This document shows positions 1,136 to 63,575 of a stretch of 64,000 nt of DNA, in pieces (within the stretch, counting starts at the first letter, position 1; each line of letters starts with the position of its first letter). The position numbers were made by a program, and so were the translations under genes. The notes beneath the pieces are model-generated. The model had not been told where the DNA came from. It saw only the letters and a list, made by a program, of their open reading frames with translations, and did no database searches. Origin of the DNA: Macrostomum lignano (taxonomy: Eukaryota); contig NIVC01000337.1 in assembly GCA_002269645.1 (NCBI GenBank), positions 682,001-746,000 on the forward strand. The letters run 5' to 3'.

Positions 1136-6016
<4,881 letters not shown>

Positions 6017-41325: not shown

Positions 41326-41735
41326 ATTTGCGAGTCATAAGACCAAGCGGTCAGTTTTATGATTAAATAATTAAAGATCGAGTCCCACTTTCAAAGGCTG
41401 TTCACTCCACTCAGAAAAATCTATATTTACCCACAAAGCCAGTCTGTACAGTTTATAATATTAAGAAAATATTTTCAACAGAAAAAAATCTGGTTGGGAG
41501 TCTCTAGGACATCACAAAAAATATTCTAAACTGGCGTCACCGGCCCCCGAAAGCCGGCTGACAAAACTGATCGATTTGCACGGCCGCTTTGATCGATCGG
41601 AATTCGGTGATAGCAGGGAGAATTCAGTGGAGAACTGAGCGGCCGCCCCCCCCCCAGCCAGATCCCCGCCATGCGATTGCGGCTGGCTGGGAAAGAGATT
41701 GGGGAGCTTCGCTCGCGGGGGCGGGTCAGCCGGGG

Positions 41736-42812
41736 TCACAAGATGGCGCAGGCGGTCGCTGACTCGGCCGACGGAGGAGGCGGCGGCGGCGGCTCCGGCC
41801 GCCTCTCCCAGTGCAGGCGGCGGTCGCAGCCATAGACAAACAGGCGGCGGCCGCAGCTGAACTCGCAGGCGCAGACGGGCACGAGGCGGACGGTGAGCCG
41901 CTGCAGCAGCAGCCGGCAGTTCGAGTCGCCAGCCTCGGTGGCCAAGTGCCGGTTGGTCAGGACCTCAGCGGCCAGAACCAGGCCCAGGGGGAACCGGGAC
42001 TCGCTCAGGGCGACCCGCGGCCCCACCTGACGATGCACCGGCCGGCCGTTCGCCTCGGCCAGCAGCCCGGCCGGCAGCCCGGCCGCCGTCAGCAACGCGC
42101 TGTCGATGGTCACCGACCAGGTCGCCTGCAGCCAGCGGCTCGGCACTAGCTGGCCGGCGCCGGCGCAGCGGCCGCACTCGACGCCGGACACTCGGCCTCC
42201 GCAGGCCGGACACCGGACGCTGCCCCTGCCAGCGCAGACGAAGCAGCGGTGAGAGTCGCCGCCGCCTCCGCCGCCTCCGCCGCCGCCGTGGCAGCCGGGG
42301 CAGGTCACGTGACCTTTGCGCCTGCACCGGCGGCAGTTCGAGTAGCCGACGCCGTGGCAGCTCGGACAGGCGGCCGGCCGGCCGACCCGGCCAGGCAGCG
42401 GGACGGCCGCCTCCGCCTCGGTGAAGGCCGCCGGGATCGGCCGCTTCGCCTCCCAGCTGCTGGCCGGCACCGGGTCATCCTGAAGGCAGCGCCGCAGCAG
42501 CTGCTGCCTCGCCGATCGCCGGTCGCCAACCAGTCGGCAGTCGTCCTCGCCGTGGAGCTCCTCCTCCGGGCAGGGAAGCAGGCGGTCCTGCAGGCTGTGC
42601 CGCTCGTACCAGCTGGCCAGGGTGCACACGAAGGCCTCGCCGTGGACCAGCCGAACGCCAGACGGCGCGGCGGCTTCGTCCTGGTTGCCGTCGGGACGGC
42701 GACAGCAGCAGCGGTGCAGGAGGCGGCGAAATCTCTGGCGCCGAGCCAGCAGCTCGAGGGCGTCCGCTTCGGTCAGCCGCCAGCCGGAGTGATTCTCTGA
42801 GTCTGCTGTCAT
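41736..42812 (-). CDS. SSUH2: SSUH2-like protein with CxxCxGxG zinc-binding repeats and a C-terminal CaaX (CAIL); 5' end uncertain
   Basis: CPSCHGVG, CRRCRRKG, CPGCHGGG, CFVCAGRG, CPACGG and CGRCAGAG repeats, followed by LLLQRLTVRLVPV...LFVYG and terminal CAIL, as in the SSUH2 family. First ATG at 42812; acceptor (tttcag) just upstream, exon starting at 42868. The upstream part of ORF 41736..43418 is repeat-derived. Confidence 0.75.
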   Translation of the reverse strand: MTADSENHSGWRLTEADALELLARRQRFRRLLHRCCCRRPDGNQDEAAAPSGVRLVHGEAFVCTLASWYERHSLQDRLLPCPEEELHGEDDCRLVGDRRSARQQLLRRCLQDDPVPASSWEAKRPIPAAFTEAEAAVPLPGRVGRPAACPSCHGVGYSNCRRCRRKGHVTCPGCHGGGGGGGGGGDSHRCFVCAGRGSVRCPACGGRVSGVECGRCAGAGQLVPSRWLQATWSVTIDSALLTAAGLPAGLLAEANGRPVHRQVGPRVALSESRFPLGLVLAAEVLTNRHLATEAGDSNCRLLLQRLTVRLVPVCACEFSCGRRLFVYGCDRRLHWERRPEPPPPPPPSAESATACAIL

Positions 42813-42974
42813 GATGGCAGGGCCGAAAGTGCAGCCGTTGGGGTCGACAGGGGCTCCGCAGTCTGGCGCTGAAATAGGGGAGCTCAGCCAGTCCGCCGGA
42901 GCCAATGGGAGGCCGCAGATTCCCCCTCCATCACCCAACCGGCTGCTGCCGTGGTGAAGCTGGCCAAGGCGAAC

Positions 42975-43340
42975 CGGAGCCACCATTGTCATACAGCTGT
43001 AGGCTGACTTCAGAGCCACCATTGTCAGACAGCTGTAGGCTGACTTCAGAGCCACCATTGTCAGACAGACATTGTAGGCTGACTTCAGAGCCACCATTGT
43101 CAGACAGACATTGTAGGCTGACTTCAGAGCCACCATTGTCAGACAGCTGTAGGCTGACTTCAGAGCCACCATTGTCAGACAGACATTGTAGGCTGACTTC
43201 AGAGCCACCATTGTCAGACAGACATTGTAGGCTGACTTCAGAGCCACCATTGTCAGACAGACATTGTAGGCTGACTTCAGAGCCACCATTGTCAGACAGA
43301 CATTGCAGGCTGACTTCAGAGCCACCATTGTCGGACAGCT
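42975..43340. repeat. 36/39-bp minisatellite (ttcagagccaccattgtcagacagacattgtaggctgac)
   Basis: Tandem copies upstream of the SSUH2-like exon. Confidence 0.93.
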
Positions 43341-44749
43341 TTTACAGCCAGCCCACAGTTGTGGAAATTGTGGTTTGCGGACGAGAGTTGAACTTTGGAG
43401 GCCTCTGGCTCTGAGCAACCTGGGGAGTCGAAAGCCGGTTTAAAGGTAAACACAGCACACACGGGCGTCACGGATTTTGCTTTACTTATAATGAAACTTC
43501 GAATTCAAGAGCGTGCAGCTCGATCTCTGTCAGCCTGGTAGATAAACAAAGTTTTTAAAAAAATTGATTGAACTCTTGATAGAGCGGTCATCCAGGACAC
43601 GGGATCTGTTTACCGAAGAACTTCAGATTGGAGGGGCTGGCAGAGGGAAAGTGGGAGGAAACGGGGGGGGGCTGGCTGCGGGGATGGAATAAAATAACTT
43701 GGGAGAAAAGGAGAACTCTGCATAGAGAGGAAAAGCGAAATGAGGACGCAGAATATGCGCAGGTGGCTAAAGTGCATGAGGGCTGCGGGCATCCTGGCGC
43801 AACGTCTCCGGTGACATTGTCCCACAACCAGAGCTGACAGAAATGCTGCCCATTCCGCCGACTCCTGAGCAACCGCGCTAATAATACTGCTGATACTGCT
43901 ACTCATGCACACGCTCACACAGGACCGAGTGCTGTGTGCTGAAGGTCCAGAAGCTCCGACAGAGCCAGAGCCGATGCAGACAGATGTGGTCGACGTGCTG
44001 ATGTAATTTTGGAGGCTTGGCAAGGCTGCACTGAGGCGCTGTGCTGATCGGCTCAAGGGTTGTATTGAGTTGTGTTTATGAGACAAATCTGACTCCCTGG
44101 CAACAATTAGCGACTTTATTCTCGTTGAGAAGGTGCGTAACGAAACGTTTACCAGTCTTCGTGAATTTCGTGTGCCTGTGTTTCTCCCTTGGGGGAAGTT
44201 CTACCGCTAGAAAGCAGTGAAAAAATTATACGATATCACACCATATTTTCGTTTTCATCTCGCAGACATAAGTCCAGAATACAGACTTAACATTAAGGCT
44301 TGTAAGTTGAGAACTGAGCACAAATCGTGTTCATAACAAGTCCCAGTTTAGATGCAAATCAATCGAATCTGATCAAGTCCTTAGAGACGGGCCTCGACAT
44401 CTTTCCGGCCAAGTAGATTATCATGACTATCATTCTTATTCGACGTGCCTTAATTCCGTTTCCGTGACAGGAAAGCCATTTTGTGCTGCAATTACTCGCA
44501 CAGAGGCCCATTATTCACGGGTATGGCAATATACTACTTATAAGATTGGGCTTTCAGATCCAGTTGGCAGAGGCAGAACATGGAAGATAATTTATAATAC
44601 ACACCATCATGTAGCCCGACCTGTATACTGATAAACTGGCCGTCACTGATGTACTTTTAAGATTTTAACCGACATGCTTAAGGTTATCAGACAAATTTTA
44701 GGATTTAAAACAATTAGGCAAAGTGAATTAGTGAAACGAAGCGAGTCGC

Positions 44750-45040
44750 ACCACTGCCAGCCAATCACAGGCCAGTAACCCCACCCCGACTGCCAGACAA
44801 TCACAGGCCAGTAACCCCCCACCTTCCCGACTGCCAGCCAATCACAGCCCAGTAACCCCGACTGCCAGCCAATCACAGGCCATTAACCCCGACTGCCAGC
44901 CAATCACAGGCCAGTAACCCCTGATTGCCAGCCAATCACAGGCCAGTAACCCCCCAACTGCCAGCCAATCACAGGCCAGTAACCCCCGATTGCCAGCCAA
45001 TCACAGGCCATGCCAGTAACCCCCGATTGTCAGTCAATCA
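44750..45040. repeat. ~33-bp minisatellite (gccagccaatcacaggccagtaacccccgact) containing CCAAT motifs
   Basis: About 8 diverged copies. Confidence 0.85.
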
Positions 45041-45649
45041 CTGGCCTTTGAGCTTTGAATCCAATATACCAAAAATGCTGAAAGTTGATTCTGAAAGAAA
45101 GTTGGGAAACAACCTAACAACAAAATGTTCTCAATATTAGCTACTTTTATCAGTAACGAGCAACGGATATTGCTGCTCTGATTTGTTTAGCTTTACATTT
45201 AGCTATATTTCCCGTTTAAGCTTGTGCCGGATATACATTAGGCCAAGATATCTTGCAACAAGTCTAAGAAAAACATAAAATAATAATAAACTCATGCTGC
45301 GATAGAAAGCTTTCAGAATGCCAACGACAATAAATCAAGATAATTGACAAAATAGAATCGAAACAAATCATTCAGTATCCAGGTAAAATAGAAATAGAAA
45401 TGGCATTGACAAAATGCAACGGGAGTAATTATGTAACATCATTAATAACACATCATTAGGATAAATTCCAAAAACAAAGTTAAAGTAGATTGCACTTTTG
45501 AAATTCGAGTGCTTCAAGAACATTGTGCCCTTTAAAGCCGAATAACAAAATATGCAACCGTGCTAATTGACTTACTGGAAAGGGAGGCAATTTTGTCTGC
45601 GCACAACACAGCAGACTTGTGCGCGGGTGTCAACGGAGAATAGACTAGA

Positions 45650-45970
45650 TTCTCAGGTGGGTGGGGAAGATTCTCAGGTGGGTGGGGAAGATTCTCAGGT
45701 GGGAGGGGAAGATTCTCAGGTGGGTGGGGAAGATTCTCAGGTGGGTGGGGAAGATTCTCAGGTGGGTGGGGAAGATTCTCAGGTGGGTGGGGAAGATTCT
45801 CAGCTTGGGTGGGAAGATTCTCAGGTGGGTGGGGAAGATTCTCAGGTGGGTGGGGAAGCTTCTCAGGTGGGTGGGGAAGATTCTCAGTTGGGTGGGGAAG
45901 ATTGTCAGGTGGGTGGGGAAGTTGTCAGGTGGGTTGGGAAGATTCTCAGATGGGTGGGGAAGATTCTCAT
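45650..45970. repeat. 21-bp G-rich minisatellite (gattctcaggtgggtggggaa)
   Basis: Direct reading. Confidence 0.93.
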
Positions 45971-46150
45971 GGGGAAGAATTTCAATGGGTGCGCGATTCT
46001 CGTCCGGGCTGGAGATTCTCGGGTAAATTTGCTCGAATCCAGAGAAAAAGGCATTTTGGTGGGTGCAGACCGGACACAAATCTAACAAATCCAAGTCCAA
46101 TTTCGAAACAAACACAATCTCATATTACATAGAAGGGCCGAGCAATTCTG

Positions 46151-47791
46151 TCAAGCCGGCCGGCCGCTGCCAGCCAGCCTGGCCGCCGCCCAGTCGGCCG
46201 CAATCAGCAGGCAGCTGGCCGCGTGCAGGCAGAAGCCAATGGCAGCCCAGAAGCGCAGCGTGTCGCCGGCCCCCAGCAGCAGGAAGCCCATGCAGGTGTA
46301 GTCGAACACGCGCATCTTGAAGAACCAGCGCGCCAAGTAGGCCACCGACTGGTTCAGCCTGGCCCGACGGAGCAGCCGGTCCAGCGCGTCCTCGGCGTAG
46401 CGGGCCAGCGGGATGGTCAGGAAGGACAGGAAGTAGCCGCCGTGGACGCCGTGCCAGTAGGCGGAGACGGCCATGGTGACGGGCAGGCGGAGCGCCCGGC
46501 CGGGCACCCGGCGGTAGACGAAGGCGGCGAGCCAGTGCTGCACAGAGCGGTTCCAGGCCTTCATGCCAGCCTGCACGGTGGGCGCGAACTCGCAGCCGGC
46601 CTCGTCGATGTTGTGCACCGACTCGTAGCTGATGTCGTCGCTTTTGTTCAAGTCGCCGGCTCCGTCAATGGCTGGACGAGACTGCCGCTGCTGCCGCTGC
46701 TCTTCCAGGACTTCAAGACGCGTTGGGCCCTTGGTGGCGACGTGCGTGAAAAGATTGCTGGGTCACTGAGTGCAACCTGCTGCCACCGCGGTCAGTAAGC
46801 AGACACTCCGGCACTGCTCAGCAGACACCCTGTCTACCATCAAGCAGACACCCTGCCTACCATAATGAGACACCCTGCCTACCATAAGGAGACACCCTGC
46901 CTACCATAAGGAGACACCCTGTCTACCATCAAGAAGACACCCTGTCCACCATCAAGCAGACACCCTGTCTACCATCAAGCAGACACCCTGTCCACCATCA
47001 AGCAGACACCCTGTCTACCATCAAGCAGACACCCTGTCTACCATCAAGCAGACACCCTGTCTACCATCAAGCAGACACCCTACCTACTATCAAGCAGACA
47101 CCCTACCTACTATCAAGCAGACACCCTGCCTGCCATCAAGCAGACACCCTACCTACTATCAAGCAGACACTCTGCCTACTATCAAGCAGACACCCTACCT
47201 ACTATCAAGCAGACACCCTGCCTATTATCAGGCAGACACCCTACCTACAGAAAACAGAGAATACCCCAACCAGCCAGTCATTCGATCAAATACTATCACC
47301 GATATGTATAGAAAAAGCAAGAGGTCTCGCTCACCTCTCCGCAGCGCGGTTCGGACGCGGCCGGATAGCCGCCCAGGCCGACGGCCATGCAGACGCACTC
47401 GGACACAACCCAGGCGAAGTACATCCGGCAGCGGAAGGTGGTGAACATGGCGAACATGAAGTAGATCCTGTAGGCCCAGCTGGAATCAACCAGCAGGTCG
47501 TCAGTCCTGGCGTAGTCAATGAAGTACCACTGCGACAAGATCAGGTAGGCTACGCCGTACAGCGGCGCGTAGGCAAGGCGCTTCCACAGGGCAGCGCCGA
47601 CGGCGGGCGGGGGCGGCGCACCGGGCGCCTGGAGCCGGTCAACCAGGTCCCGGTAGATGCTGAACCGGTAGTAGGGCCCGGTGAGCACGCCCGGGTATGC
47701 GTAGGCGTAGAGCATAATCTGGGTGGGGCAACGGGCTCGGCGATATAAGCTGGCAGGGAGTGCGTCAAACAGCAGGGCGCCAAATCCAAGC

Positions 47792-47877
<86 letters not shown>

Positions 47878-48514
47878 GGGCGCTAAATCGAGAGACAGTA
47901 GGGCTCAAATTAGGAAAAAAATTTCAGTTCCTTGAAAGTCCGGTTGGACTCCAGAAAAAAGGCGAGTTCAGTCAGTTCCCAAGGATCGAATCCCAAAGAT
48001 TTCGAGTCTGTCCAACCTGCCAGAACTTCGGCGACACCCCGGTGTAGCGCAGCTGCAGCTCCAGACTCCGCCGTTCGCCATCGTCCGTCGAGTCTCGCAG
48101 CCGCCGTTCCAACCGGCGGGTGTCGACAATTTCGAAGGCCACGCCGACCATTCGCAGCGTCATGAGCAGCTGGACAGCGTTGCTATGCGGCGAGGGCTTG
48201 GTGAATCCCAGCAGATGGCAAGTGCGGAAGAAGGCCAGGTAGCCGAAGCACCAGGCGGCGCAGAGGGCGTGGACTCGATTCCTGGGCCCGAACGAGCAGA
48301 TGGAAGCGGAGACCAGAGCGACCAGCACCGAGTGCCACATGAAGGAGCTGCAGACGGCGGCGCAGAGCAGGAAGCCGAAGGCGGACACCAGCTGCACAGC
48401 GGCTGAGGCTGGGAGGAAAGGCAGCGCTGAGCGGAGGTGGCCGCGGGCGAACACCGGCCCGACTGCCAGAGAGATAAGCAGCAGGCTGGCGTAGACCCAG
48501 TCGTCTGGTGTCAT
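46151..48514 (-). CDS. MBOAT7: Lysophospholipid acyltransferase 7 (MBOAT7), 486 aa; exons 48514-48017, 47718-47335, 46729-46151
   Basis: MTPDDWVY N-terminus, NAVQLLMTLRMVGVAFE, YAYAYPGVLTGPYYR, GEGPT, WNRSVQHWL, SAYWHGVHGGYFLSFLTIP (catalytic His) and WFFKMRVFDY. All three exons join in phase 0. Confidence 0.93.
46820..47250. repeat. 23-bp minisatellite (accatcaagcagacaccctgtct) in MBOAT7 intron 2
   Basis: Direct reading. Confidence 0.93.
47795..47873. repeat. (GA)n microsatellite in MBOAT7 intron 1
   Basis: Direct reading. Confidence 0.97.
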
Positions 48515-48584
48515 AGCGCGGCTCTGGTCCGTGCAAACTGCAATGCCGGTTATTGCGGCTTGAACTGACAAGCCTAACAGTCTT

Positions 48585-49465
48585 CACTCCTGCCCCCTCA
48601 CTCCTGCCCTCCTCACTCCTGCCCTCCTCACGCCTGCCTTCCTCACTCCTGCCTTCCTCACTCCCTGTCTTCCTCACTCCCTGCCTTCCTCACTCCTGCC
48701 CTCCTCACTCCCTGCCTTCCTCACTCCCTGTCCTCCTCACTCCTGCCCTCCTCACTCCTGCCCTCCTCACTCCTGCCCTCCTCACTCCTGCCTTCCTCAC
48801 TCCCTGCCCTCCTCACTCCTGCCCTCCTCACTCCTGCCTTCCTCACTCCCTGCCTTCCTCACTCCCTGCCCTCCTCACTCCTGCCCTCCTCACTCCTGCC
48901 TTCCTCACTCCTGCCCTCCTCACTCCCTGCCCCCTCACTCCTGCCTTCCTCACTCCTGCCCTCTTCACTCCTGCCTTCCTCACTCCTGCCTTCCTCACTC
49001 CCTGCCCTCCTCACTCCTGCCCCCCTCACTCCTGCCCTCCTCACTCCTGCCCTCCTCACGCCTGCCTTCCTCACTCCTGCCTTCCTCACTCCCTGTCTTC
49101 CTCACTCCGTGCCTTCCTCACTCCTGCCCTCCTCACTCCCTGCCTTCCTCACTCCCTGTCCTCCTCACTCCTGCCCTCCTCACTCCTGCCCTCCTCACTC
49201 CTGCCTTCCTCACTCCCTGCCCTCCTCACTCCTTTTCTCCTCACTCCTGCCTTCCTCACTCCCTGCCTTCCTCACTCCCTGCCCTCCTCACTCCCTGCCC
49301 CCTCACTCCTGCCTTCCTCACTCCTGCCCTCTTCACTCCTGCCTTCCTCACTCCTGCCTTCCTCACTCCCTGCCCTCCTCACTCCTGCCCCCCTCCTGCC
49401 CCTTACTCCTGTCCTCCTCACTTCTGCCCCTTTTACTCCTGCCCTCCTCACTCCTGCCCCTCCCT
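48585..49465. repeat. 15/16-bp pyrimidine-rich minisatellite (ctcctcactcctgcc) between COPS4 and MBOAT7
   Basis: Direct reading. Confidence 0.95.
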
Positions 49466-49779
49466 GACTCAGCTCACTTCCCTGAGCCCCTGTCCCCAGC
49501 AGAACCCAGCATCAACACAAGCTCATCTGAGCAGTCTATATGTTACATGTTACATGACTTAATTGAAAAGACAAAGAAGAAGTTTATTAACTGGCATGCT
49601 TCTGCATGATATTTAAATAGCAAACTGAATTAAGGGAGGCAAAACTGACTGCCAACTTTGTTTATTGACAGCGCAATGAAGAGTATAACTATTCCTATAT
49701 TTCAACTGAACACTCCATAATACAGAACACTATATATCAGGCGGGGACAAAATGCCAAGTCTTAGGGCCAGGCACGCAA

Positions 49780-52651
49780 TCAGACATTGGCCTGGCAGGC
49801 GGCCTGGTACCAGTCCGGGTGCAGGCCGGCCACCCGCTCGCAGACGGAGTTGACCTGCTCGCACAGGTCCCGGATGCGGCAGTCCCACAGGCTCATCGGG
49901 TGGCGCTCCTCGAACTGCACAAAGCCGCGAATCTGATCGATGCAGCCGACAAGCCGCTGTTCGGCGATCATCCGGGCGGCCATTTGCTCCGCCCGCTCCG
50001 GCTGCACCTCCAGCAGCTGGCCCAGGTAGGCCAGGCTGATGTTGTTATACAGCCGGCTGACCGCCAGCAGGTTGTGCTCGGCAACCGCCGCCTCCAGGGT
50101 TGTGAGGCCGTCCGAGTTCGGGCTGGCCTGGCGCTGGTGCGGCTGCAGGCTGGCCGAGAATTCCAGCAGCTCGTCGCGGCGGACGAGGCGCTCCTGGTAG
50201 TGTGGAGTGGGGCGAGAGACTGCCATGCCTTTGGCTGCCGCTAAACTGCTGGCTCAAGACTGCAGGGGCGGGGACTCAAAGCATTTATCAATAAAGAGCG
50301 AAGACTCAAAGCTAATTAAAGAGCGGTGACTCAAAGCTAATTAAAGAGCGGTGACTCATGACTAATTAAAGAGCGGTGACTCATGGCTAATTAAAGAGCG
50401 GTGACTCATGGCTAATTAAAGAGCGGTGACTCATGGCTAATTAAAGAGCGTTGACTCGTGGCTAATTGAAGAGCGGTGACTCATGGCTAATTAAAGAGCG
50501 GTGACTCATGGCTAATTAAAGAGCGGTGACTCATGGCTAATTAAAGAGCGTTGACTCATGACTAATTGAAGAGCGGTGACTCAAAGCTAATTAAAGAGCG
50601 ATGACTCATGGCTAATTAAAGAGCGGTGACTCAAAGCTAATTAAAGAGCGGTGACTCATGGCTAATTAAAGAGCGGTGACTCATGGCTAATTAAAGAGCG
50701 GTGACTCATGGCTAATTAAAGAGCGTTGACTCAAAGCTAATAAAGAGCGGTGACTCATGGCTAATTAAAGAGCGTTGACTCATGACTAATTGAAGAGCGG
50801 TGACTCAAAGCTAATTAAAGAGCGATGACTCATGGCTAATTAAAGAGCGGTGACTCAAAGCTAATTAAAGAGCGGTGACTCATGGCTAATTAAAGAGCGG
50901 TGACTCATGGCTAATTAAAGAGCGGTGACTCATGGCTAATTAAAGAGCGGTGACTCATGGCTAATTAAAGAGCGTTGACTCAAAGCTAATAAAGAGCGGT
51001 GACTCATGGCTAATTAAAGAGCGTTGACTCATGACTAATTGAAGAGCGGTGACGCACCCGGAAGAGTTTCTCCACAAGGCCGCGCCAGGCCAGCCGCTGC
51101 GAGCGCTCGTCTTTGTACAGCCTGGCCAGCATGGCCGACCGCTGTGAGGACGCCGGGCACAGCACGGTGCACACGGTGGCGGCTTCCAAGTGCTGCATCT
51201 GGTGCTCAGTCTCGCCAGCCTGCAGCGACAGCTCTATGTAGCGCATAGCGGCCTCGTAGAATTTGCCTTTTAAATCAAGGACTCTGGCGTAGTACACCTG
51301 ACAGGTAGGTTTAATCAAATGGGTCTGACAGTTATCGGATGATGCAGGTTTTCTCGTGATAGCCGTGTGCTCTAAATAGCAACACACCTGAGCCGCAGGT
51401 GTGCAGCTAAAAGCATTGAGCAGTTTGTGCTGGAACTGTGGCGGGTTCACAGCTCAGAGCTGCTATGTACCTATATAGCTGCGTACTAACCGCGGCTAAC
51501 TCTGCTTAACTCGCGTCTACATAGCAACTAACCTTGTACTGCTGCAGGTGCGGCGGGTCCTTGGCGGCCAGCTGGCAGCGACTCAGCGCCTGTTCGGCCT
51601 TGTCGGCGTCCTTCTCGCGCAGGTAGAGCTCCACAGTCTTCAGCAGGACGCGGGCTTTCTCGTCCCGGCTGCCATCGGGGCGGAGTGGAAGGGAATTTGG
51701 TTACCGTGGATCTGGAGGCAGGGCGGAGACCCAGGCTGAGGATTCGGGAGGGTTGGAGGGGGCGGAGACCCAAGCTGAGGATCCAGGAGAGTTGGAGCTG
51801 AAGGGGCGAAGACCCAGACGGAGGCTCCGGAGGGAGGGCTAGAGGAGGGGCGGAGACCCAAGCTGAGGATCCGGAGGGAGGGCTGGAGGAGGGGCGGAGA
51901 CCCAAGCTGAGGATCCGGAGGGAGGGCTGGAGGAGGGGCGGAGACCCAAGCTGAGGATCCGGAGGGAGGGCTGTAGGAGGGGCGGAGACCCAAGCTGAGG
52001 ATCCGGAGGGAGGGCTGGAGGAGGGGCGGAGACCCAAGCTGAGGATCCGGAGGGAGGGCTGTAGGAGGGGCGGAGACCCAAGCTGAGGATCCGGAGGGAG
52101 GGCTGGAGGAGGGGCGGAGACCCAAGCTGAAGATCCGGAGGGAGGGCTGTAGGAGGGGCGGAGACCCAAGCTGAGGATCTGAGTATAGGCCTGTATTATC
52201 CCATGACGGCTGCAAGGCATGCTTACCTGAACTGCTTCTGCACGGACTCCATATCGATGGCTGCAAGCGCCTCGGCGGCCTGCAGGTAGCGGCCCTGCGC
52301 CTCCAGGCCGCGAGCCAGCAGCTGGCGGACACCCACAATCTGGTCCTCGAACGAGATGGCCCGATTCTGCAGGCAGGCCAGCATGACTTGGCAGGTCTCC
52401 AAACCGACCTGGGCGCTGGACTCAATCCGGCTGCTCAGCAACTCGACCAGGTCGGCCACCACCTGTCTGGACACGGCCAGGCCAACCGACTCATCCAGTA
52501 GGAAGTTGAGAAACAGCTGCAGTTGCTGCTTAGCGGCGTTCAAATCCTGGTTGAGGATGGTTTTGAGCAGCAGCTCGTATTTGTGCACCGCCACGGAGGC
52601 GTTGTCTATGGCGCTGATGCGGCGAAGCTCTTCTTCTAGCTGAGCGCTCAT
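49780..52651 (-). CDS. COPS4: COP9 signalosome subunit 4, 404 aa; exons 52651-52227, 51668-51533, 51297-51058, 50193-49780
   Basis: VSRQ, NRAISFEDQIVGVRQLLA, YYARVLD, RSAMLARLYKDERSQ, and a PCI domain AVAEHNLLAVSRLYNNIS...IDQIRGFVQFE, ending WDCRIRDLCEQVN. Phases 2,0,0 are consistent. An alternative in-frame ATG lies at 52666. Minus-strand AATAAA at 49661-49666. Confidence 0.93.
50300..51055. repeat. 25-bp minisatellite (gagcggtgactcatggctaattaaa) in COPS4 intron 3
   Basis: About 30 copies. Confidence 0.96.
51715..52185. repeat. 44-bp minisatellite (gctgaggatccggagggagggctggaggaggggcggagacccaa) in COPS4 intron 1
   Basis: Direct reading. Confidence 0.95.
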
Positions 52652-52714
52652 TGGCCCGCCGAGCATGCAGGAGAGGAGGGGTGGGTGCGCGCCGGCTTGG
52701 AATAGGCTGGTCTG

Positions 52715-52935
52715 CTGGATGTACATTCAATGGATAGATGTACATTCAATGGATGGATTTACATTCAATAGATGGATGTACATTCAATGGATGGATGTAC
52801 ATTCAATGAATGGATGTACATTCAATGAATGGATGTACATTCAATAGATGGATGTACATTCAATGGATGGATGTACATTCAATGAATGGATGTACATTCA
52901 ATGGGTGGATGCACATTCAATTGATGGATGTATAC
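52715..52935. repeat. 19-bp minisatellite (tggatgtacattcaatgga) upstream of COPS4
   Basis: Direct reading. Confidence 0.92.
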
Positions 52936-54159
52936 AGGCCTAGACTATGGAATTCCTGCGTTTAACTTGGACTTGAAACCGAGAGCCTGTGCTAGGAAAC
53001 TAAGATGAGGAGTCAAGAGTCAGGAGACTCCTACCTCCTTAAGAGTAACTCTAGGAGTGTCGCAGGGTTTCTCTCCTCCTAGCTACTGATATCAAGAGAT
53101 CCAGAAATTAACTCTTAAATCAATTACAGGGTCGATTGGGCGCCCCTTTCTTATTGGGCGCCCTGTAGGGGGGCTGCACTAGATTGCTAGTCAAATCTAA
53201 ATGCTGCTTCCTCCTCATAAATACTTCCCTAGATACCGCAGCTCAAATACAATAAAAGTACATTAATACATCGAACTCTTTCTGACAAGAAGCTTCGTGC
53301 TTGTAAAATACATGGACTTTCACCTTTTAAAGATTGCGCAACACGCCTAGACGACAGTCCTAAGCTGCACATTGACTCTTTTGACGCCCAAGTTTCACAG
53401 CACGTTGAGAATAATTCCTAGTCGATAATTCTATAGAACTAATTGCTGCTAGTCTAAGAGCTAAGCCTTGCAATTGATTTAGACGCATTTTATGGCGGCT
53501 TCTTTTGTGCTATCTAATCTTATCTCTCTCCCTCAGTTCTTATCTTATCACATCGGATAATTATAATTAGCACACAAACTAACGCAGTGAAATTTCAATA
53601 AAAAATCTAAATGTATTTTACTTTGTTTTATTAATTTAACTTAGCCACTTGGACAGCGGGAGTGGCCGAAAATCAGAATGGTAAAAAATGACAATTCCAA
53701 CAAGCAGCGGCTGCACAAGGATTGACAATTCGCTAACAAAGATTGGTCAAAACAACTAACAGAAGGCATTGTTGAGCAATACTAATAACAATACTATCCA
53801 CTGACTACAGGTAGTACAGATTCGCATACAGTAAGGACAAATTGCATTCTCACGCACACGAGGATTGTCCAAATGAGGCGACTGTGATTTATAATAAATC
53901 ATAGTTTAGCATATTGCGTTAATAAACTTCTAAGCGGTAGATGGGTTAGAAATCCTACTAAGTATTGATTAGAATGCTGTCAATTCGAGTCAGAATCAGC
54001 TGCTCACTTGAACTACGAGTAGCATGCATGGCGTTTAGTCTAATGTATCTAATGTACACGTACTGCTTGCGGCACAGAATCATAACTCTATCTGCCATTA
54101 GGCAGTAAGACTGCAATATCGCAGTGCGGTAAATCAGCTTGTTGGTCTGAAGGCTGGCA

Positions 54160-54475
54160 AACTGAGGATCTGGGAGGCTGGCAATGGCCCAGCAACTGAG
54201 GATGCAAGAAGCTGGCAATGGCCCAGCAACTGAGGGTCTGAGATGTTGGCCCAGCAACTGAGGGTCTGAGATGTTGGCCCAGCAACTGAGGATGCAAGAA
54301 GCTGGCAATGGCCCAGAAAGTGAGGATCTGGGAGGCTGGCGGTGGCCCAGCAACTGAGGATCTGGGAGGCTGGTGGTGGCCCAGCAACTGAGGATCTGGA
54401 AGGCTGGCAGTGTCCCAGCAACTAAGGATCTGGGAGGCTGGCAGTGACCCAGCAACTGAGGATCTGGGAGTTAGA
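54160..54475. repeat. ~33-bp minisatellite (ggcccagcaactgaggatctgggaggctggcaat)
   Basis: Diverged tandem copies downstream of TMX2. Confidence 0.88.
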
Positions 54476-54754
54476 AATTGCACAGACTATGCTATGCAAG
54501 CTAGTTTTAATTGACTGGTGCTAAGTCAGACGCAAAAAGGTGGCAGAAGCGAGGCAAAACCTAAGGCGGAGGATAAATTCTTAATAATTTTATGAACTCA
54601 TCCAACTGATTCAAGCAGTTCGAGTCTCGCTGAATGCACAGCAGATAAAAAGGCTAAGAGAATTAATGAAATGCGCAAATTATTTTGCTAACAGAATCCT
54701 GGCACAGCTCCAGCTCAATCGCCAGGTTGAAGGCCATAGCAACTAGTCGAGTCT

Positions 54755-55268
54755 TCAGTCGGTCTTCTTAGCGGCCCCGGGTCGCAGCGGGTTCTTCGTG
54801 CACTCGTTATACAGCTCGGCCAGCCCGAAGGCCGACACGAGATTGTCGTAGCTGAACACGAACCTGGCCACGCGCTTCTTGGCGCCCACAAGCGGCCGCC
54901 TGTCCACCTCCTTGTTGGCTTTGAACAGCGCCACGGTGGGCAGCTGGCGGCTCCAGCCGCTCTGGTCGATGCCGTACTTTTCAGCCACTTTCGGGTACTT
55001 GGTGACGTCCAGTTTGCCAAAGCGCAGATTGTCCAGCCCGTAGTCATTTGACAGGCGGGCGAACACCGGGGCGAGGTCGGCGCACGGCGGCGACCACACG
55101 GCGTAGAACTCAATCAGCCAGTAGACCCGGGGGTCGCAGGATTTCAGCTCCTCTTCAAGGGTTTTGTCGTTGAAATACACGATGGTGTCGGGGCCGCGGT
55201 ACACCGGCTGGCGAAGGAGCGAAGCCTGAGAATCCGAGAAGCAGGGGATGGGCAGTTGACTCGCAGCC

Positions 55269-55305
<37 letters not shown>

Positions 55306-55476
55306 GCCTTAGTGTCTGTCTGTATATCTGTCTGTCTGCCTTAGTGTCTGTCTGTCTGTCTGTCTTAGTGTCTGTCTGTCTGCCTTAGTGTCTGTCTGTC
55401 TGTCTTAGTGTCTGTCTTTCTGTCTGTCTGTCAGCCATAGTGTCTGTCTGCCTGTTATCCTTAGTGTTTGCCTTAG

Positions 55477-55509
<33 letters not shown>

Positions 55510-56513
55510 GCCTTAGTGTCTGTCTGTATATCTGTCTGTCTGCCTTAGTGTCTGTCTTTCTGTCTGTCTGTCAGCCTTAGTGTCTGTCTGCCTGTCATCC
55601 TTAGTGTCTGTCTGTCTGTCTTAGTGTCTGTCTCTCTGTCTGTCTGTCAGCCTTAGTGTCTGTCTGTCTGTCTGTCTGTGTGCCTTAGTGTCTGTCTGTC
55701 TGTCTTTCTGTCTGTCTGTCAGCCTTAGTGTCTGCCTTAGTGTCTGTCTTTCTGTCTGTCTGTCAGCCTTAGTGTCTGCCTTAGTGTCTGTCTTTCTGTC
55801 TGTCTGTCAGCCTTAGTGTCTGTCTTTCTGTCTGTCTGTCTGCCTTAGTGTCTGTCTGTCTGTCATCCTTAGTGTTTGCCTTAGTGTCTGTCTGTCTGTC
55901 TGTCTGTCAGCCTTAGTGTCTGCCTTAGTGTCTGTCTTTCTGTCTGTCTGTCAGCCTTAGTGTCTGCCTTAGTGTCTGTCTTTCTGTCTGTCTGTCAGCC
56001 TTAGTGTCTGTCTTTCTGTCTGTCTGTCTGCCTTAGTGTCTGTCTGTCTGTCATCCTTAGTGTTTGCCTTAGTGTCTGTCTGTCTGTCTGTCTGTCATTC
56101 TTAGTGTTTGCCTTAGCGTCTGTCTGTCTGTCTTTCTGCCTGTCTTAAAGAGATTAAACACTAACCTGCACAAGCCAGACGATGGCATAAGCGACAGCGT
56201 AAACCGGGTTCTCCTGGAAGAACATCACCATATTGGACATCTTGGCGTACATACAGAAGTTGGTGAGATAGCTGGCCACCGTGGGCTGGCGCTTGTTTTT
56301 AAAGACAATAACGCAGCCAAGAAAGGTGAAGATCTCCCACTGGCGCAGCTCGAGCAGGCAGTTATCGAACAGAAAGTCGCATACCGGAGGCAGCGTTTTG
56401 GTTATGATGAAAGCGCCAGCCATTAGGAAGTTGGCCAGGAAGTAGGGATGCATCAGGGTCAGGGCCTGGTCCACAGCGGACTGGCTGACCAGAGATCTCA
56501 GGCTTGGCAGCGC
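54755..56513 (-). CDS. TMX2: Thioredoxin-related transmembrane protein 2; exons 56513-56166 and 55225-54755; initiator ATG not encoded at the exon start
   Basis: HPYFLAN...LPPVC...[17 protein letters not shown]...YAKMSN; [19 protein letters not shown]...[13 protein letters not shown] (the SxxC motif of TMX2)...LRFGKLDV...[10 protein letters not shown]. The exons join in phase 0. Confidence 0.93.
55268..56140. repeat. (TGTC)n microsatellite interrupted by ccttag motifs, filling the TMX2 intron
   Basis: Direct reading. Confidence 0.95.
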
Positions 56514-56530
56514 CTAGAATATTGTTAGCA
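56514..56530 (-). promoter_or_regulatory. 3' splice acceptor (aatattctag) in front of the TMX2 coding exon; candidate trans-splice site
   Basis: The acceptor's TAG is an in-frame stop, and it is followed directly by the open TMX2 frame ([25 protein letters not shown]). Confidence 0.55.
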
Positions 56531-56569
56531 AAACAGAAGCTTTAAGCTTTATAAAATAAAATTAGTTTA

Positions 56570-57315
56570 GGCAGCGGATGGGGTGGTGGCTGATGCGTAG
56601 ATTCCGGCAGGCGGTAGATGGGGTGGTGGCTGATGTGTACATTGGGACAGGCGATAGATGGGGTGGTGGCTGATGTGTACACTAGGGGAGGCGGTAAATG
56701 GGGTGGTGGCTGATATGTACATTGGGGCAGGCGGTAGATGGGGTGGTGGCTGATGCGTACATTAAGGCAGGCGATAGATGGGGTGGTGGCTGATGCGCAC
56801 ATTAGGGCAGGCGATAGATGGGGTGGTGGCTGATGTGTACATTAGGGCAGGCGGTGGATGGGGTGGTGGCTGATGCGCACATTAGGGCAGGCGATAGATG
56901 GGGTGGTGGCTGATGTGCACATTAGGGCAGGCGGTGGATGGGCTGGTGGCTGATGTGCACATTAGGGCAGGCGGTGGATGGGGTGGTGGCTGATGTGTAC
57001 ATTAGGGCAGGCGATAGATGGGGTGGTGGCTGATGCGCACATTAGGGCAGGCGATAGATGGGGTGGTGGCTGATGTGTACATTAGGGCAGGCGGTGGATA
57101 GGCTGGTGGCTGATGTGCACATTAGGGCAGGCGGTGGATGGGGTGGTGGCTGATGTGCACATTAGGGCAGGCGGTGGATGGGCTGGTGGCTGATGTGCAC
57201 ATTAGGGCAGGCGGTGGATGGGGTGGTGGCTGATGTGTACATTAGGGCAGGCGGTGGATGGGGTGGTGGCTGATGCGTACATTAGGGCAGGCGGTGGATG
57301 GGGTGGTGGCTGATG
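56570..57315. repeat. 40-bp G-rich minisatellite (gggcaggcggtggatggggtggtggctgatgtgcacatta)
   Basis: Direct reading. Confidence 0.96.
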
Positions 57316-59067
57316 AATTTGTATATATTAGTAAATATTCAAAAAAACAAATCAACCATGCCATCGATTTGGTTATGCATATAAAGACGTATGTATTTTC
57401 CATTTGATTGTAATGCATGGAAAAATTACATTGGGAAATTGAACAGAAAAACTTCAGAAACTTAGTTCGATCGACGCTAAACTTTAACAAATTTGGGAAA
57501 TTATCACACAAACACATTAGATACGAGCTCACACCCTACACATGCAGACAAAAAAGCTTTGCTTTAAGTTATACATAAGATGAATCAAGGATCTGCAAAC
57601 TCAAATACATGCAGAGTCCTTACCGAACGGACAGAACTGTCGGGGGTATTTATGGGAGATGAATTGCAACATCAACATCAGCGAATATGATGCAGATCTG
57701 GGATTAACAGGGGCGCGGCTTTGGAGATTAGGCTTACAAATTCAGCAAATGACTATGCGAAAGCATGAAACAAGCAAGACAAGGCACCCAGTCTCTGCTG
57801 TATGAAATTCAACAACAGAAATCAATGGGAGCCATCAGTAATTGGATCCAACAGGCAATAGCGACACACGGGCCACAGTAGCACAGAGAGAATGTGACTT
57901 GATCTGTGTACTCATTACAGAGGTGTGGTTAGTGTTGTGTCATTGCGGTTAATAAATAAGCAACAGTTAGCTGGGGCATGGCAGACTTACAGGTGACCTA
58001 TGCATGCACGTAGATATGGTACGTCCGTATGCAGGATTCGGGACAATTAAAGCAGCAATACCAGCTATTATAAACTATAGTTTCTAGGCGGGCGAATTGA
58101 TCAAAATCAGTTATAACAAATTATGTGATAAAGCAGATTTTTTTGAAAATCTTTCTCAACTTCCAGACATCCGAGTGGAAAAATGTTGCAAAAATGTACA
58201 GCCAGGGAACACTGGAGATACACGAACAGTGCGGGGGGGGCATTGCGTAAGGCCGATAGATCTGGGCCGGTTGCTAGGATATTCCTATAGCGAACACGAG
58301 TGTTCTGTAAAAAACTTTAATAGCAGATAAATCAATTATAAATATAAGCAGAGAGACAGGAAAGACTAAAAGTTCGCGGTTGAATATGTAGAGGGCCGGG
58401 GCACAGAGCCAGGACGTTGCATTCCTTCGCAAATTTAATTTGATTATTAAATATTCAAATATTATCAATCAGCTTGAGTACACCGCAGGACAGGCGGCAG
58501 ACAGCACACAAGTAAGTAGTGTAACAATATGAAGCAAACAATGGAGAGGACAGCAAGCACGGTGAGAACTAATCTAATAACCTACGACATGAGCATACCT
58601 GCATAATGAATCTAATATTATTATATATAGTAAATAATACTATTATAATGGATCGGTGCGCAGCTGACGGCCGGCGCAACACGGTGATTAAATCAAAGTA
58701 ACCTTGCAGATCGAGAGTACAAATTAGGGGCATTATAAGCAAGTAAAACAAACAAACAAATAAGCAGAAATTTGAAAAAAATCAATGCACAAAATTAAAT
58801 TAACAGAAAGAGACAGAAACATTGCAACAACAAAATGGTTGGAGGGACCGACGCCTCGCTCTTATATAAATAAATAAATTTGTGTGTTTTTTCATTTTGT
58901 TAACTTGAAAATGTTTGAAAATTGCTTTTTTTCTTCTTCTTCGGGCAAAAATATGAAACTCTGCTTGTTAATTCTCTGTCCAGCTAAAGCAGCCGCTCTT
59001 TACTCAGCTGTGTTGCAGTCTGTTGTGTTGTGAAAGCGCCAGACAGATAAGATTAGAGCCAGCCAGC

Positions 59068-59943
59068 TCAGGCCTGATGCGACCGCTGCAGGTGGTTGCG
59101 CAAGTTGCCGAGCCGGACATAGGACTTGCCGCAGTGAGGACACCTGTGCTGCCTGTGCGCCTGCAGCTGCTGCTGCTGACTCGGCTGACCCGGCTGCTGC
59201 AGCTGCTGCATCTGGCGGTGCAGCGCCGAGTCATCCAGCGCCGAGGCCAGCCCGTACGCGGCGCCGGGCATCAGGGAGGTGTGCATGGACACCGGCGGCT
59301 GATTGGCTGTCACGCAGCCCAGCTGCTGCTGCTGCTGCTGATGATGATGTTGAAGCTGCGGCGGAAGCAGCTGCTGGGCGGAAGACACGCCGCTGCCACC
59401 ACCGCCGCCGCCGCTGTTGCCAAGGAATGTGCTGAGGTAGAGCTTCTTAGGCGGCGGCGGAGAAGCGAAATGATGCTGAGTGTTAGGCTTGGCCCGGGTG
59501 CAGTGCAGGCGGTAGTGCAGGTCGGGGTCCGTGTGCATGGCCACGTGCATCTCTAATGAGGAGGCGTAGGCGAAGCGGGCGGCGCACAGCTGGCAGCGGT
59601 ACAGCTCGTCCATGGCGTGCACCCGCTCGTGAAAGTCGCGCTGCTCGTCCGTGGCAGCCGGGGCGTCGCAGTGCGGACAGAGGCCGGCCGAGATGCGCCT
59701 GGACCACTCCTGCTGCTCCGGCTGCTTGGCCAGCAGTTGCTGCTGCTGTTGCTGTTGTTGTTGCTGCTGTTGCAGAAGTTGCTGCTGCTGTCGGCAGGTG
59801 TCGCCGCTTGACGAGTTGGACACCGCCTCTGGCGTGCTCAGCTCAGCAGGGTCACCGGGAGCGGCCGACAGAATCGAGGCCAGAAATCGACTGGCAAGGG
59901 CCGGCGGAGGCGGCTGGCGCTGGAACTGGTGGTCGGTGGCCAT
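59068..59943 (-). CDS. C2H2 zinc-finger protein with polyQ/polyG tracts; N-terminus may extend to about 60081
   Basis: Three fingers: CPHC...FHERVH, YRCQLC...MHVAMH and HRCPHCGKSYVRLGNLRNHLQRSH. First in-frame ATG at 59943; the frame stays open upstream. Confidence 0.85.
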   Translation of the reverse strand: MATDHQFQRQPPPPALASRFLASILSAAPGDPAELSTPEAVSNSSSGDTCRQQQQLLQQQQQQQQQQQQLLAKQPEQQEWSRRISAGLCPHCDAPAATDEQRDFHERVHAMDELYRCQLCAARFAYASSLEMHVAMHTDPDLHYRLHCTRAKPNTQHHFASPPPPKKLYLSTFLGNSGGGGGGSGVSSAQQLLPPQLQHHHQQQQQQLGCVTANQPPVSMHTSLMPGAAYGLASALDDSALHRQMQQLQQPGQPSQQQQLQAHRQHRCPHCGKSYVRLGNLRNHLQRSHQA

Positions 59944-60074
59944 GACTGCCGGGATGCTTTTGCTGGTGCGAACTGTTGCTAACCGGACTGGATTGGCTGC
60001 TGCTGCGATTTCAGCGATTTCAGCAGCAAGGTTTGGCAATGGGTGGAATTCGCGGTGAATGCGATTGGCTGAGA

Positions 60075-60300
60075 TCCCTGCCTAGCAACAACACCTGAAA
60101 TTCCTGCCTAGCAACACCTGAAATCCCTGCCTAGCAACACCTTTAATCCTTGCATAGCACAAAAACTGAAATCCCAGCCTAGCAACACCTGAAACCCAGC
60201 CTAGCAACACCTGAAACCCTGTCTAGCAAAACCCTAAATCCCTGCCTAGCAACAACACCTGAAATCTCTGCCTAGCAACACCTGAAACTGCCTAGCAACT
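60075..60300. repeat. ~21-23-bp minisatellite (cctagcaacacctgaaatccctg)
   Basis: Diverged tandem copies. Confidence 0.85.
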
Positions 60301-60699
60301 AACGCTGCCACTATCCTTATAGACACTTATAGATGAATTGGAATAAATAAGAGCAATCTTTAAAATCGTGAAATTATACGGCTCAAAAAGTTCATTGCAG
60401 AGTAGATTAAAAGTACACAGAGTATGAACAACAATTGAAAAAATCAGAATAGTTCTATGAAAAACCGATTCAATTTGGCACCAAAATCAAAACAATTGTA
60501 AATTCCACGTCTAATTAACATTCTATGATAATAACCACTGGAAGAAGGCTTGAAAGACAGCAAAAACACAATGGCCAAATAAGTAAAAAAAATTCTAAGC
60601 ATTAAATTTTTCACGAATTTTAAATAAAATTACCGCAAAATCAATTAAAAAGCACAGGAAGTTTTTTATTATGCGTCATTAAATCTGATTAAATCCTGA

Positions 60700-61200
60700 A
60701 CATTGTTTTAAGAATCTGCAGCGATTTGTGTGTTGCAATTTTTGCAGAGACTGCTAAGATGGAATTGTTGCGATCACCAAACTGTATTTTGAAAGAACTC
60801 TGGTGGGATTTTCCTGAAAATATGCTGGGATTCACCAAGAAATCAGCTGGGGCTTTCGTAGAAATCTGCAAATTTTTTCTTGAAAACTGCTGGGATTTCC
60901 TAAAAATCTGCTGAAACTTTCGTATAAATATGCTGAAATATTCCTAGAAATCTGATGGGACTTTCTTAGAAATATGCTGAGATATTCCTAAAAATCTGCT
61001 GTGATTTTCCAAGAAATCTGCTGGGATTTTCCCAGAAATCTGCTGGGGTTTTCTTAGAAATCTGATGGGAATTTCTTAGAAATATGCTGGGATTTTCCTA
61101 GAAATCTGCTGGGATTTTCCTAGAAATCTGTGGGGATTAAAATATATTTTATGCTAGGATTTATGTAGGGTTGATTTTCTCAGAAATCGATTTGGAATTT
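60700..61200. repeat. Degenerate ~22-bp minisatellite (aaatctgctgggattttcctag)
   Basis: Diverged tandem copies. Confidence 0.8.
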
Positions 61201-61252
61201 CCTGATAAAAAACGAGTCATTTTATGTTAGATTCGCGGCTCTCCAGTGACAG

Positions 61253-63575
61253 CTAGACGTCCGCCGCCTTGGACTGCCTGGCGTGGCACAGACGCAGCAC
61301 GGCGTAGACAATGCCGATGGCCACACCGATAGCGAACAGGCAGCCAATAACAATGGCCCAGGCCCAAGCGCCCGACGAGAAAATGGAGAACTTCGGCACC
61401 TTGTAGAATTCGGCCGCACCGCCGGCCGGCATAAAGCAGGCGTAGCTTCGCTTAGCGCTGCACTTGTCCATGACGATGAACCTAAACAGGTACAGTATGT
61501 TCGTGATGAAGAAGGCGCAGCGCTCCTCTAGCTGGCAGTTGCGATTGTTGCCAAGGCGGGAGCTCTGACAGCCAATCAGATCGGGCCTGGCGATGGTTAA
61601 GAAATAATTATTCAAGCCTTCTTGCAGCAGCAGCAGGGAGGGGGCTTTTTTGAGTCTGATTTAGTTAGTGAGCTCAGTTACTTTTGCGTCACTCTTGAGT
61701 AGCTTCAGTCATTATTGAGTAGACTCAATCCCTCTTGAGTAGCCTCAGTCACTCTTGAGTAGCTTTAGTCCCTCTTGAATGGCATCAGTTCATATTGAGT
61801 AGCCCCAGTCACTCCTGAGTAACCTCAGTTAATCTTGATTAGCTTTAGTCACTCCTTAGTAGCCTCAGTCACTCCTGAGTAGCCTCAGTCACTCTTGAGT
61901 AGCCTCAGTCACTCCTGAGTAGCCTCAGTCACTCCTGAGTAGCCTCAGTCACTCTTGAGTAGCCTCAGTCACTCCTGAGTAGCCTCAGTCACTCCTGAGT
62001 AGCCTCAGTCACTCTTGAGTAGCCTCAGTCACTCCTGAGTAGCCTCAGTCACTCCTGAGTAGCCTCAGTCACTCTTGAGTAGCCTCAGTCACTCCTGAGT
62101 AGCCTCAGTCACTCCTGAGTAGCCTCAGTCACTCCTGAGTAGCCTCAGTCACTCCTGAGTAGCCTCAGTCACTCCTGAGTAGCCTCAGTCACTCCTGAGT
62201 AGCCTCAGTCACTCCTGAGTAGCCTCAGTCACTCCTGAGTAGCCTCAGTCACTCTTGAGTAGCCTCAGTCACTCTTGAGTAGCCTCAGTCACTCTTGAGT
62301 AGCCTCAGTTACTCTTGAGTAGCCTCAGTCACTCTTGAGTAGCCTCAGTTACTCTTGAGTAGCCTCAGTCACTCTTGAGTCAACCCAAAGTCATTCTCAT
62401 AGAGCTCACTCATAGAACTGCGAGCCATCTAGCCAATAATAATAGAACTGGCCAGCGCTGGTGTAGTCCGTCAGGCCAATCCAGTTGTCCTTGGTCAGCT
62501 GGCCAGGCAGCTGCCTGTACAGCTCGGTGATGGTCTCGATGCCGGGCAGGCCAGGCGGCAGATGCAGCAGGTTGGCCCGCATAGCAACGCAGGCGGTCTG
62601 CGAGTCATCAAAGCTCAGAAGCGGGCCAGCCGAGCCGGCGTTGCCAAAGCAGTAGCCGCCGTAGGGCCGCCAGTCTGGCGGGCAGCCGCTGAACTGGCGC
62701 ACCCGGAGGATGACGCCGACACCGGTGGTGGAAGAGGCGTCGGCAGCGGCGGCAGCGACAAAGGCGACAGTAACAGTTGGCCGCGAAGTGGTGAGGGCCA
62801 TGTCGTGACCAGGCGGGGAGCCGCCCATGGGAACGGTGAGCAGGTTGTGCTGCTCCGACCAGACAGACAGATTAGCCGTCGGCATGGAGACGTTTAGTAT
62901 CTGGGTAGGAAGCAAAGCCCGGGCGGGGAGAACACGAATTGGATACTTGCTACTCATAAGTAATAAGAAATGGGAAAACGCAAATAAAATACCAACATCT
63001 CTACTCCACCAAGAACTCCATTGTTGACAGATTTCTCAAATTTGACAATTAATACAAGTCTTAGTGGTTGGAGCGTTGGACTCGCGACTGAAAGGACTGG
63101 GGTTCGATTCCCAACCCCAACTGGAACAATTTGTGTCCATGAGCAAGACGCTTGACTCTACATTGCTTCAATTCACCCAGCTGTAAAATGGGTGCCAGCA
63201 TTAGCTGGGGTAATTGAGGGTGTGTGTGGCGACCCCCCCCCCCTAGTCCTGGGACTGAACAGCCGTACGCAGCCTTCAGGTGCACCGCACATTAATAACT
63301 GGGCAGAGGTCGCTACATGCACGACTCACCTGGACAAAGTAGAGCGCCCCGGGATTCTGTGACACCGCGTGAAACGAGCACCTGTCACCTGGCCGATACC
63401 TGTCTGAGCCAGCCGGCCTGGTGTGCACATAGAAATCCGACTGCCTGATGTAATCCCGGCCGGGGGTGTCGCAGTAAAAGCTCGCCGGAGGTGGCGCCAG
63501 CGTCAGCTGAGGTTGCGCCGGCTGCAGCAGCGGCAGCAGCAACGCCGCCAGGCAAGTTAAAGATGCGGAGTTGGT
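61253..63575 (-). CDS. Type I membrane protein: signal peptide, CUB-like segment, C-type lectin domain, TM helix, short tail; exons 63575-63330, 62900-62410, 61586 (or 61562)-61253
   Basis: Signal-like LTCLAALLLPLLQP; Y-R-PGDRCSFH (CUB-like); CPPDWRPYGGYCF...SQTAC...WIGLTD...WLDGS...ERC...DKCSAKRSYAC (C-type lectin); TM WAWAIVIGCLFAIGVAIGIVYAVL. No ATG at the first visible exon. Confidence 0.75.
61660..62380. repeat. 20-bp minisatellite (gagtagcctcagtcactcct) in lectin-gene intron 2
   Basis: Direct reading. Confidence 0.96.
63055..63255 (+). mobile_element. tRNA-derived SINE with a CORE (MIR-like) domain
   Basis: A-box-like tagtggttggag (63062-63073) and B-box ggttcgattccc (63101-63112), followed by tgtgtccatgagcaag...cacccagctgtaaaatggg (63132-63192), which resembles the CORE consensus tgtgaccttgggcaag...catctgtaaaatggg. 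Confidence 0.7.

Follow-up and report, generated by a model that had tools for sequence, protein, structure and literature searches.

The TMX2 gene of Macrostomum lignano lies on the minus strand of the window (the whole 64 000-nucleotide stretch of DNA analysed here), and its first exon opens directly after the splice acceptor TTCTAG with no start codon at its head. We consider it very likely that the spliced leader of this species is joined at TTCTAG and that the AUG of the leader completes the TMX2 N-terminus. In the proposed pathway, the TMX2 pre-mRNA would be trans-spliced at TTCTAG, with the 35-nt leader joined to position 56513 (...UUGCAUG/GCGCUGCCA..., where the slash marks the junction). 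The last three bases of the leader would form the first AUG on the mature TMX2 mRNA, in frame with the exon, and translation would begin at this AUG and yield a 273-residue protein (M-ALPSL...), for which the genome would supply every residue except the initiator methionine. We infer both the joining of the leader to GCGCTGCC at 56513 and the initiation of ribosomes at the leader AUG; some additional initiation at an internal AUG (56453) may occur by leaky scanning.

Gene structure and the acceptor at the head of exon 1

The TMX2 gene consists of two exons. Exon 1 (56166..56513, minus strand) comprises 116 codons, is in phase 0 at both ends and is followed by a GTTAGT donor. The intron (55226..56165, minus strand) is made up almost entirely of a (GACA)n-type compound tandem repeat, with arrays at 55269–56147. 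Exon 2 (54755..55225, minus strand) encodes the thioredoxin domain with its WSPPC motif and the C-terminal KKTD, and ends with the stop codon TGA (54757–54755). The spliced product without methionine has 272 residues. The Pfam Thioredoxin family (PF00085) matches residues 133–226 with an E value of 2e-13, after N-terminal hydrophobic segments, and named mollusc and arthropod TMX2 proteins show 43–48% identity over ∼90% of the length. The C-terminus (...AAKKTD) fits a di-lysine KKxx ER-retrieval-type tail, which we take to be a defining mark of TMX2. Elsewhere in the window, tblastn with human TMX2 also found, on the plus strand (16045–16323), a thioredoxin-type exon that is separate from this gene and carries a PDI-like WCGHC motif.

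On the minus strand the junction reads ...GCTAACAATATTCTAG/GCGCTGCCAAGC, with the AG at 56515–56514 and the first exon base at 56513 (GCG CTG CCA AGC...). The preliminary description had placed the exon directly after ttctag, with the TAG of the acceptor as an in-frame stop, and this is what the reading frames give: the acceptor TTCTAG, the proposed trans-splice site, occupies 56514..56519 (minus strand), and in-frame translation upstream of the exon ends ...LLTIF-stop at TAG 56516–56514. The exon then begins with 20 sense codons in phase 0 (56454..56513, minus strand; 100% identical in the three genomic copies), with no stop and no ATG before codon 21. This codon, located as originally described at 56453–56451 (minus strand), is the first in-frame ATG in the genomic sequence and reads as a possible secondary start. 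A stop codon and noncoding DNA lie immediately upstream of the exon, and an ATG must therefore arrive by splicing. The GC content changes across the acceptor AG from 25% in the 60 nt before it to 67% in the 60 nt after it. A branch-point-like motif, GCTAAC (56524..56529, minus strand), is found 11–16 nt before the junction; it is unchanged in the three genomic copies and may serve as the branch point.

M. lignano has a single 35-nt spliced leader, CGGTCTCTTACTGCGAAGACTCAATTTATTGCATG, with the 3′ end ...TTGCATG, which reaches ∼30% of M. lignano genes, a set that is enriched for conserved genes, and is joined at acceptors with the motif [T/C]TN(C)AG (Ustyantsev & Berezikov, 2021; PMC8629364). 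The earlier statement that a flatworm leader ends in AUG is thus borne out in this species by the published leader (PMC8629364). The part of the start-codon argument that concerns the frame also stands: the exon is in phase 0 after a YAG, the leader AUG is in frame with GCG (AUG/GCG) and the reading is free of stops, although the prior probability that a leader AUG falls in frame by chance is ∼1 in 3. TTCTAG is a close fit to the published motif, with a T where the motif has C. The acceptor is TAG and not the commoner CAG, which counts against the trans-splice reading. With U at −3, the leader AUG stands in a context that vertebrate rules would not rate as strong, and this also counts against the reading.

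The final ATG of the Macrostomum leader has been called a translation start codon, and was left on the reads as a guard against annotation problems (Wiberg, 2023; PMC10468722). In the 2021 study of trans-splicing in M. lignano, use of the leader's own AUG as a start codon is absent; the AUG appears in one introductory sentence, as out of frame (PMC8629364). TMX2 is named in none of PMC5730564, PMC8629364 and PMC10468722, and its gene identifiers (Mlig017034.g2 and Mlig034331.g6) gave no match in the papers and supplements searched. A search of the 64-kb window for an SL RNA gene gave no leader match and no Rfam hit. Exact look-ups in the protein collection for the methionine-added protein, the protein starting at ATG 56453, the V27 variant and the VSYCEDSIYC-M... 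prefixed forms found none of them, and a word search combining the leader peptide with the TMX2 N-terminus returned no candidate proteins.

Coding character of the 60 nt before the first ATG

Codon usage was scored with a table built from 683 codons of the window (TMX2 after the ATG, CSN4 exon 1 and the ZnF ORF). The 20 codons before the ATG give a codon-usage log-likelihood ratio of +9.0 bits in frame 0, whereas the two remaining frames give −12.4 and −11.3 bits; in 2000 nucleotide shuffles of these 60 nt, +9.0 bits is never reached. On the same scale, the values are −2 to −10 for the final 60 nt of the outron and 11.3 ± 2.9 for windows of genuine CDS. The GC3 of the 20 codons is 0.80, compared with 0.75 and 0.86 in the remaining CDS. 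The openness of the stretch is by itself unremarkable, with a chance of (61/64)^20 (∼0.38) for 20 stop-free codons. By their codon usage and GC3, the 20 codons before the genomic ATG are clearly coding.

The length of the segment was compared with that in other TMX2 proteins. In all 23 aligned orthologues, 11–24 residues (median 14) precede the conserved HP(Y/H) column; the M. lignano protein would have 22 with the leader methionine and one if it started at ATG 56453. Counted to PYF, the addition of one methionine gives 23 residues, a figure from the preliminary description that we reproduced; human TMX2 has 23 residues before PYY and begins MA. The orthologue profile gains just +4.7 bits from the N-terminal 20 residues, a value matched by 15 of 200 shuffles (p ∼0.075). 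Sequence conservation of these residues across orthologues is poor, and we count the homology signal as weak support.

These results bear directly on the alternative that translation starts only at ATG 56453–56451 (MHPYF...), with the 60 nt upstream being a 5′ UTR that is open by chance. Three older gene models (P0045–P0047) do begin MHPYF at this ATG, a run of 20 stop-free codons has a probability of ∼0.4, and the TMX2 N-terminal sequence is little conserved among orthologues. Nevertheless, the 60 nt have coding codon usage in one frame only, at a level that no shuffle attains and with a GC3 like that of the remaining CDS, and no orthologue begins less than 11 residues from the HPY motif. Furthermore, an attached leader would place its in-frame AUG ahead of ATG 56453 on the mRNA. 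Because of the coding codon usage and the N-terminal lengths of the orthologues, we regard a sole start at ATG 56453 as very improbable indeed.

Gene models, upstream DNA and the three genomic copies

The annotation of the Mlig_3_7 assembly was examined in a segment, L004 (NIVC01000337.1:721780–744636), that is the exact reverse complement of window positions 39780..62636. The GenBank TMX2 CDS (L004:6124–7882) corresponds to window positions 56513..54755; it is 5′-partial and begins ALPSL... without methionine. The exact 272-residue methionine-less product is deposited under the title `hypothetical protein BOX15_Mlig017034g2, partial' (PAA85328.1/PAA91120.1). In the sister contigs NIVC01000094.1 (L002) and NIVC01004156.1 (L003 and L005), the same GCG opens the CDS, and an older and independent UniProt model (A0A1I8JH41) likewise begins ALPSL with no methionine. 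Transcripts and reads from which the leader had been trimmed were the basis of the Mlig_3_7 annotation (Wudarski, 2017; PMC5730564); trimming of the leader before annotation would leave a CDS that begins on the first base after the AG and is flagged as partial. However, the 5′-partial CDSs of the ZnF, CSN4 and MBOAT genes (window 52636 and 60018; L003:9603 and 1801; L005:14567) do not start after an AG, and the annotated starts of CSN4 and MBOAT are a few codons downstream of a genomic ATG. The partial flag alone is therefore no evidence for a trans-splice site. TMX2 is distinguished by a start that comes directly after a YAG and is the same in all three copies.

An ATG brought in by splicing could also come from an upstream exon joined in cis at 56513. 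Flatworm acceptors often serve both cis- and trans-splicing (PMC12582326), and a scan of 56514..60100 found 49 GT sites that follow an in-frame ATG with no stop in between. In the best of these 49, an ATG lies five codons ahead of a GTAAGT donor (ATGCATAGGTCACCT/GTAAGT, 57985..58005, minus strand; exon 58005..57991); the pair is kept in L002 and would add MHRSP in frame (MHRSP-ALPSL...). A stretch of 3.6 kb should, however, contain sites of this kind by chance. The GenBank CDS, which was built from transcripts, lacks such an exon and is 5′-partial at 56513 in three of three copies, whereas a transcript with the MHRSP exon would have yielded a complete ORF, and the bases found in place of TAG in the sister contigs agree with the leader CATG and not with ...CCT. 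A cis exon of this kind is in our judgement improbable. The other candidate donor suggested by the sequence has its exon end at 57624 (CCGTTCG/GTAAGG, 57618..57630, minus strand); it is the donor near 57622 for which the absence of an in-frame ATG had been reported, correctly, as its phase 0 reading (..HHIR-stop-C-stop-CCNSSPINTPDSSVRS) contains stops and no ATG after the last of them, leaving no usable in-frame ATG. Neither 57624 nor 57991 is used in the annotated CDS.

The DNA upstream of the acceptor, the presumed outron, contains a 40-nt minisatellite (56577..57315, minus strand) of 18.5 copies, which stops 63 nt short of the acceptor. Judged by eye, L002 has a clearly shorter array (∼5570–5940) and L003 a longer one (∼4520–5940). 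Outron sequence CTGCCTAAACTAATTTTATT (56540–56559, minus strand) matches leader positions 11–30 at 15 of 20 bases in all three copies. This similarity was considered as a signal and rejected as probably due to chance, since ∼3–4% of shuffled leaders match equally well (p ∼0.03–0.04).

The three copies of the locus differ at the junction itself. The three bases before GCG are TAG in the window (56514–56516), ATG in L002 (5998–6000) and TTG in L003 (5998–6000), with the first 78 nt of the TMX2 exon identical in all three copies. When genomic CTAG is compared with leader CATG, the base of the leader is present at −2 in L003 and at both −2 and −3 in L002. Pilon polishing of the Mlig_3_7 assembly drew on RNA-seq reads, and STAR was run end-to-end by the same group (PMC5730564). 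With end-to-end mapping, reads whose 5′ end falls a few bases into the leader would have to be aligned through the junction and could prevail over the DNA reads. We think it probable that the ATG and TTG before GCG are leader bases written in by RNA-seq polishing, and likelier than real variation. Footprints of the same kind at the cis junctions of the TMX2 intron were looked for and none was found. Leader-suffix matches of 8–9 nt at 23970, 34576, 39736 and 5917 were discarded; the two that were inspected have no gene-start features, and the number of matches is about that expected by chance.

If ATG and TTG were instead real differences between paralogues or alleles, one copy would have its own ATG at the position of the leader AUG and one would have lost both, and the TAG, TTG and ATG copies would represent a start codon caught moving between leader and gene within one polyploid genome. 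Within the final 47 nt of the outron, L002 and L003 have three other substitutions in common that set them apart from the window, so that on the tree ((L002,L003),window) the change from TAG through TTG to ATG needs two steps only, and the window differs from L002 by 1.6% in nearby unique DNA. On the other hand, both changed bases are the leader's bases at those positions, and the changes destroy an intact acceptor while the exons, introns and other splice sites are near-identical between the copies. Polishing by Pilon with RNA-seq reads, together with the end-to-end use of STAR by the same group, would force leader-bearing reads over the junction (PMC5730564), and the CSN4 acceptor at 52663, where the older models splice, also reads ...TGCATG without AG in three of three copies. 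We consider real variation unlikely. With either origin, as a polishing artefact or as a real variant, an ATG directly before GCG supports the N-terminus M-A-L-P.

TMX2 is flanked by a C2H2 zinc-finger gene (60018..59068) and by CSN4 (from ∼52663), all on the minus strand. The spacers on either side of it (∼2.5 kb upstream and ∼1.8–2.1 kb downstream) consist mostly of tandem repeats; the published operon criterion subtracts repeats before the distance threshold is applied (PMC8629364). In one sister contig, TMX2 and CSN4 stand under a common transcriptional-unit name, Mlig034331 (g6 and g7), and the two genes are fused in four older models, which use a donor at 54803, within TMX2 exon 2. The common unit name and the fused models suggest a TMX2–CSN4 read-through or polycistronic precursor. 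The DNA upstream of TMX2 differs by at least 1.6% between copies. In comparison, the CSN4 gene including its introns (window 49760–52700) is ∼99.9% identical in the window, L002 and L005, which differ there by no more than one repeat-number change, one substitution and one 1-nt indel, and divergence along the locus is thus very uneven.

The start region of CSN4 (CCTGCATG/C, 52663..52671, minus strand) is an acceptor in the older models. The assembly has TG and not AG at this site, and the last six nucleotides are those of the leader 3′ end; the window, L002 and L005 all read CCTGCATG/CTCGGC, without AG. The four older models that fuse the genes splice a 28-nt mini-exon (53881..53854, minus strand; acceptor CACAG, donor GTGAGA) to CTCGGCGGG at 52663. 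The ATG at the CSN4 site is in frame with CSN4's own ATG at 52651–52649 (MLGGPMSAQ...). Judged by these bases, site 52663 may be a second leader footprint, with the leader AUG in frame there too. The annotated start of CSN4 was tried as a second case of an acceptor with a leader AUG and was rejected: position 52636 (GCT in L003) is not preceded by AG, the start depends on the copy and a genomic ATG lies upstream.

The proposed leader-completed frame and its parallels in other organisms

If the proposed joining is correct, TMX2 is a conserved ER thioredoxin-family gene that joins the flatworm genes with a frame complete only after trans-splicing. TMX2 would then not be correctly expressible from the genomic sequence alone, and a mutation of the acceptor could cost the protein its N-terminus. 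Genes of this kind appear as `partial' in GenBank or as truncated MHPYF... entries in UniProt, and addition of the leader ATG repairs them. If the overwriting of acceptor AGs by leader bases were general in Mlig_3_7, it would corrupt trans-splice acceptors and create false start codons. The main practical value of the finding is for annotation, together with the likely polishing artefact in the reference assembly.

In its architecture the protein resembles other metazoan TMX2 proteins, with a short N-terminal segment, hydrophobic segments, a thioredoxin domain and a KKxx-type tail, and it is 43–52% identical to invertebrate sequences. The other TMX2 orthologues retrieved differ in that the start codon is included in the deposited protein. 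The closest relative outside M. lignano (P0001, encoded by L001, Logan contig DRR639055_105577) is 52% identical. Its own ATG follows an acceptor-like ttctttacag by 7 nt (L001:560–620), and an AUG-ended leader joined there would be out of frame.

The use of a leader AUG as initiator is known from Schistosoma (Cheng, 2006, as cited in PMC9851317 and PMC12582326); in S. mansoni, according to the citation of that work in PMC9851317, 28% of trans-spliced mRNAs have the leader AUG in frame, and more than 40 cDNAs depend on it. The TMX2 case is like the ORFs described there in having an AUG-ended leader, an in-frame acceptor and a conserved N-terminus without a genomic start codon, and in that the ORF would be complete only after trans-splicing. 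Cheng is said to have tested initiation at the leader AUG directly in 2006. Unlike the Schistosoma case, the present one is sequence-based and concerns TMX2, in a free-living macrostomid whose 35-nt leader is its own.

TMX2 also resembles the slORFs defined with slORFfinder, in which the annotated ORF is incomplete, or a different one, as long as the leader has not been added in silico (PMC9851317). The slORFfinder survey differs in that it covers nematodes, an ascidian and trypanosomes with ribosome footprints, and mostly near-cognate NUG codons; it has no flatworm footprints (PMC9851317). The organism, leader and assembly are those of the published studies of the Macrostomum spliced leader (PMC5730564, PMC8629364 and PMC10468722), and the boundary at 56513 is taken from that annotation. 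The mechanism is already known in flatworms and the leader ATG is recognized in Macrostomum; TMX2 is a further, ordinary example.
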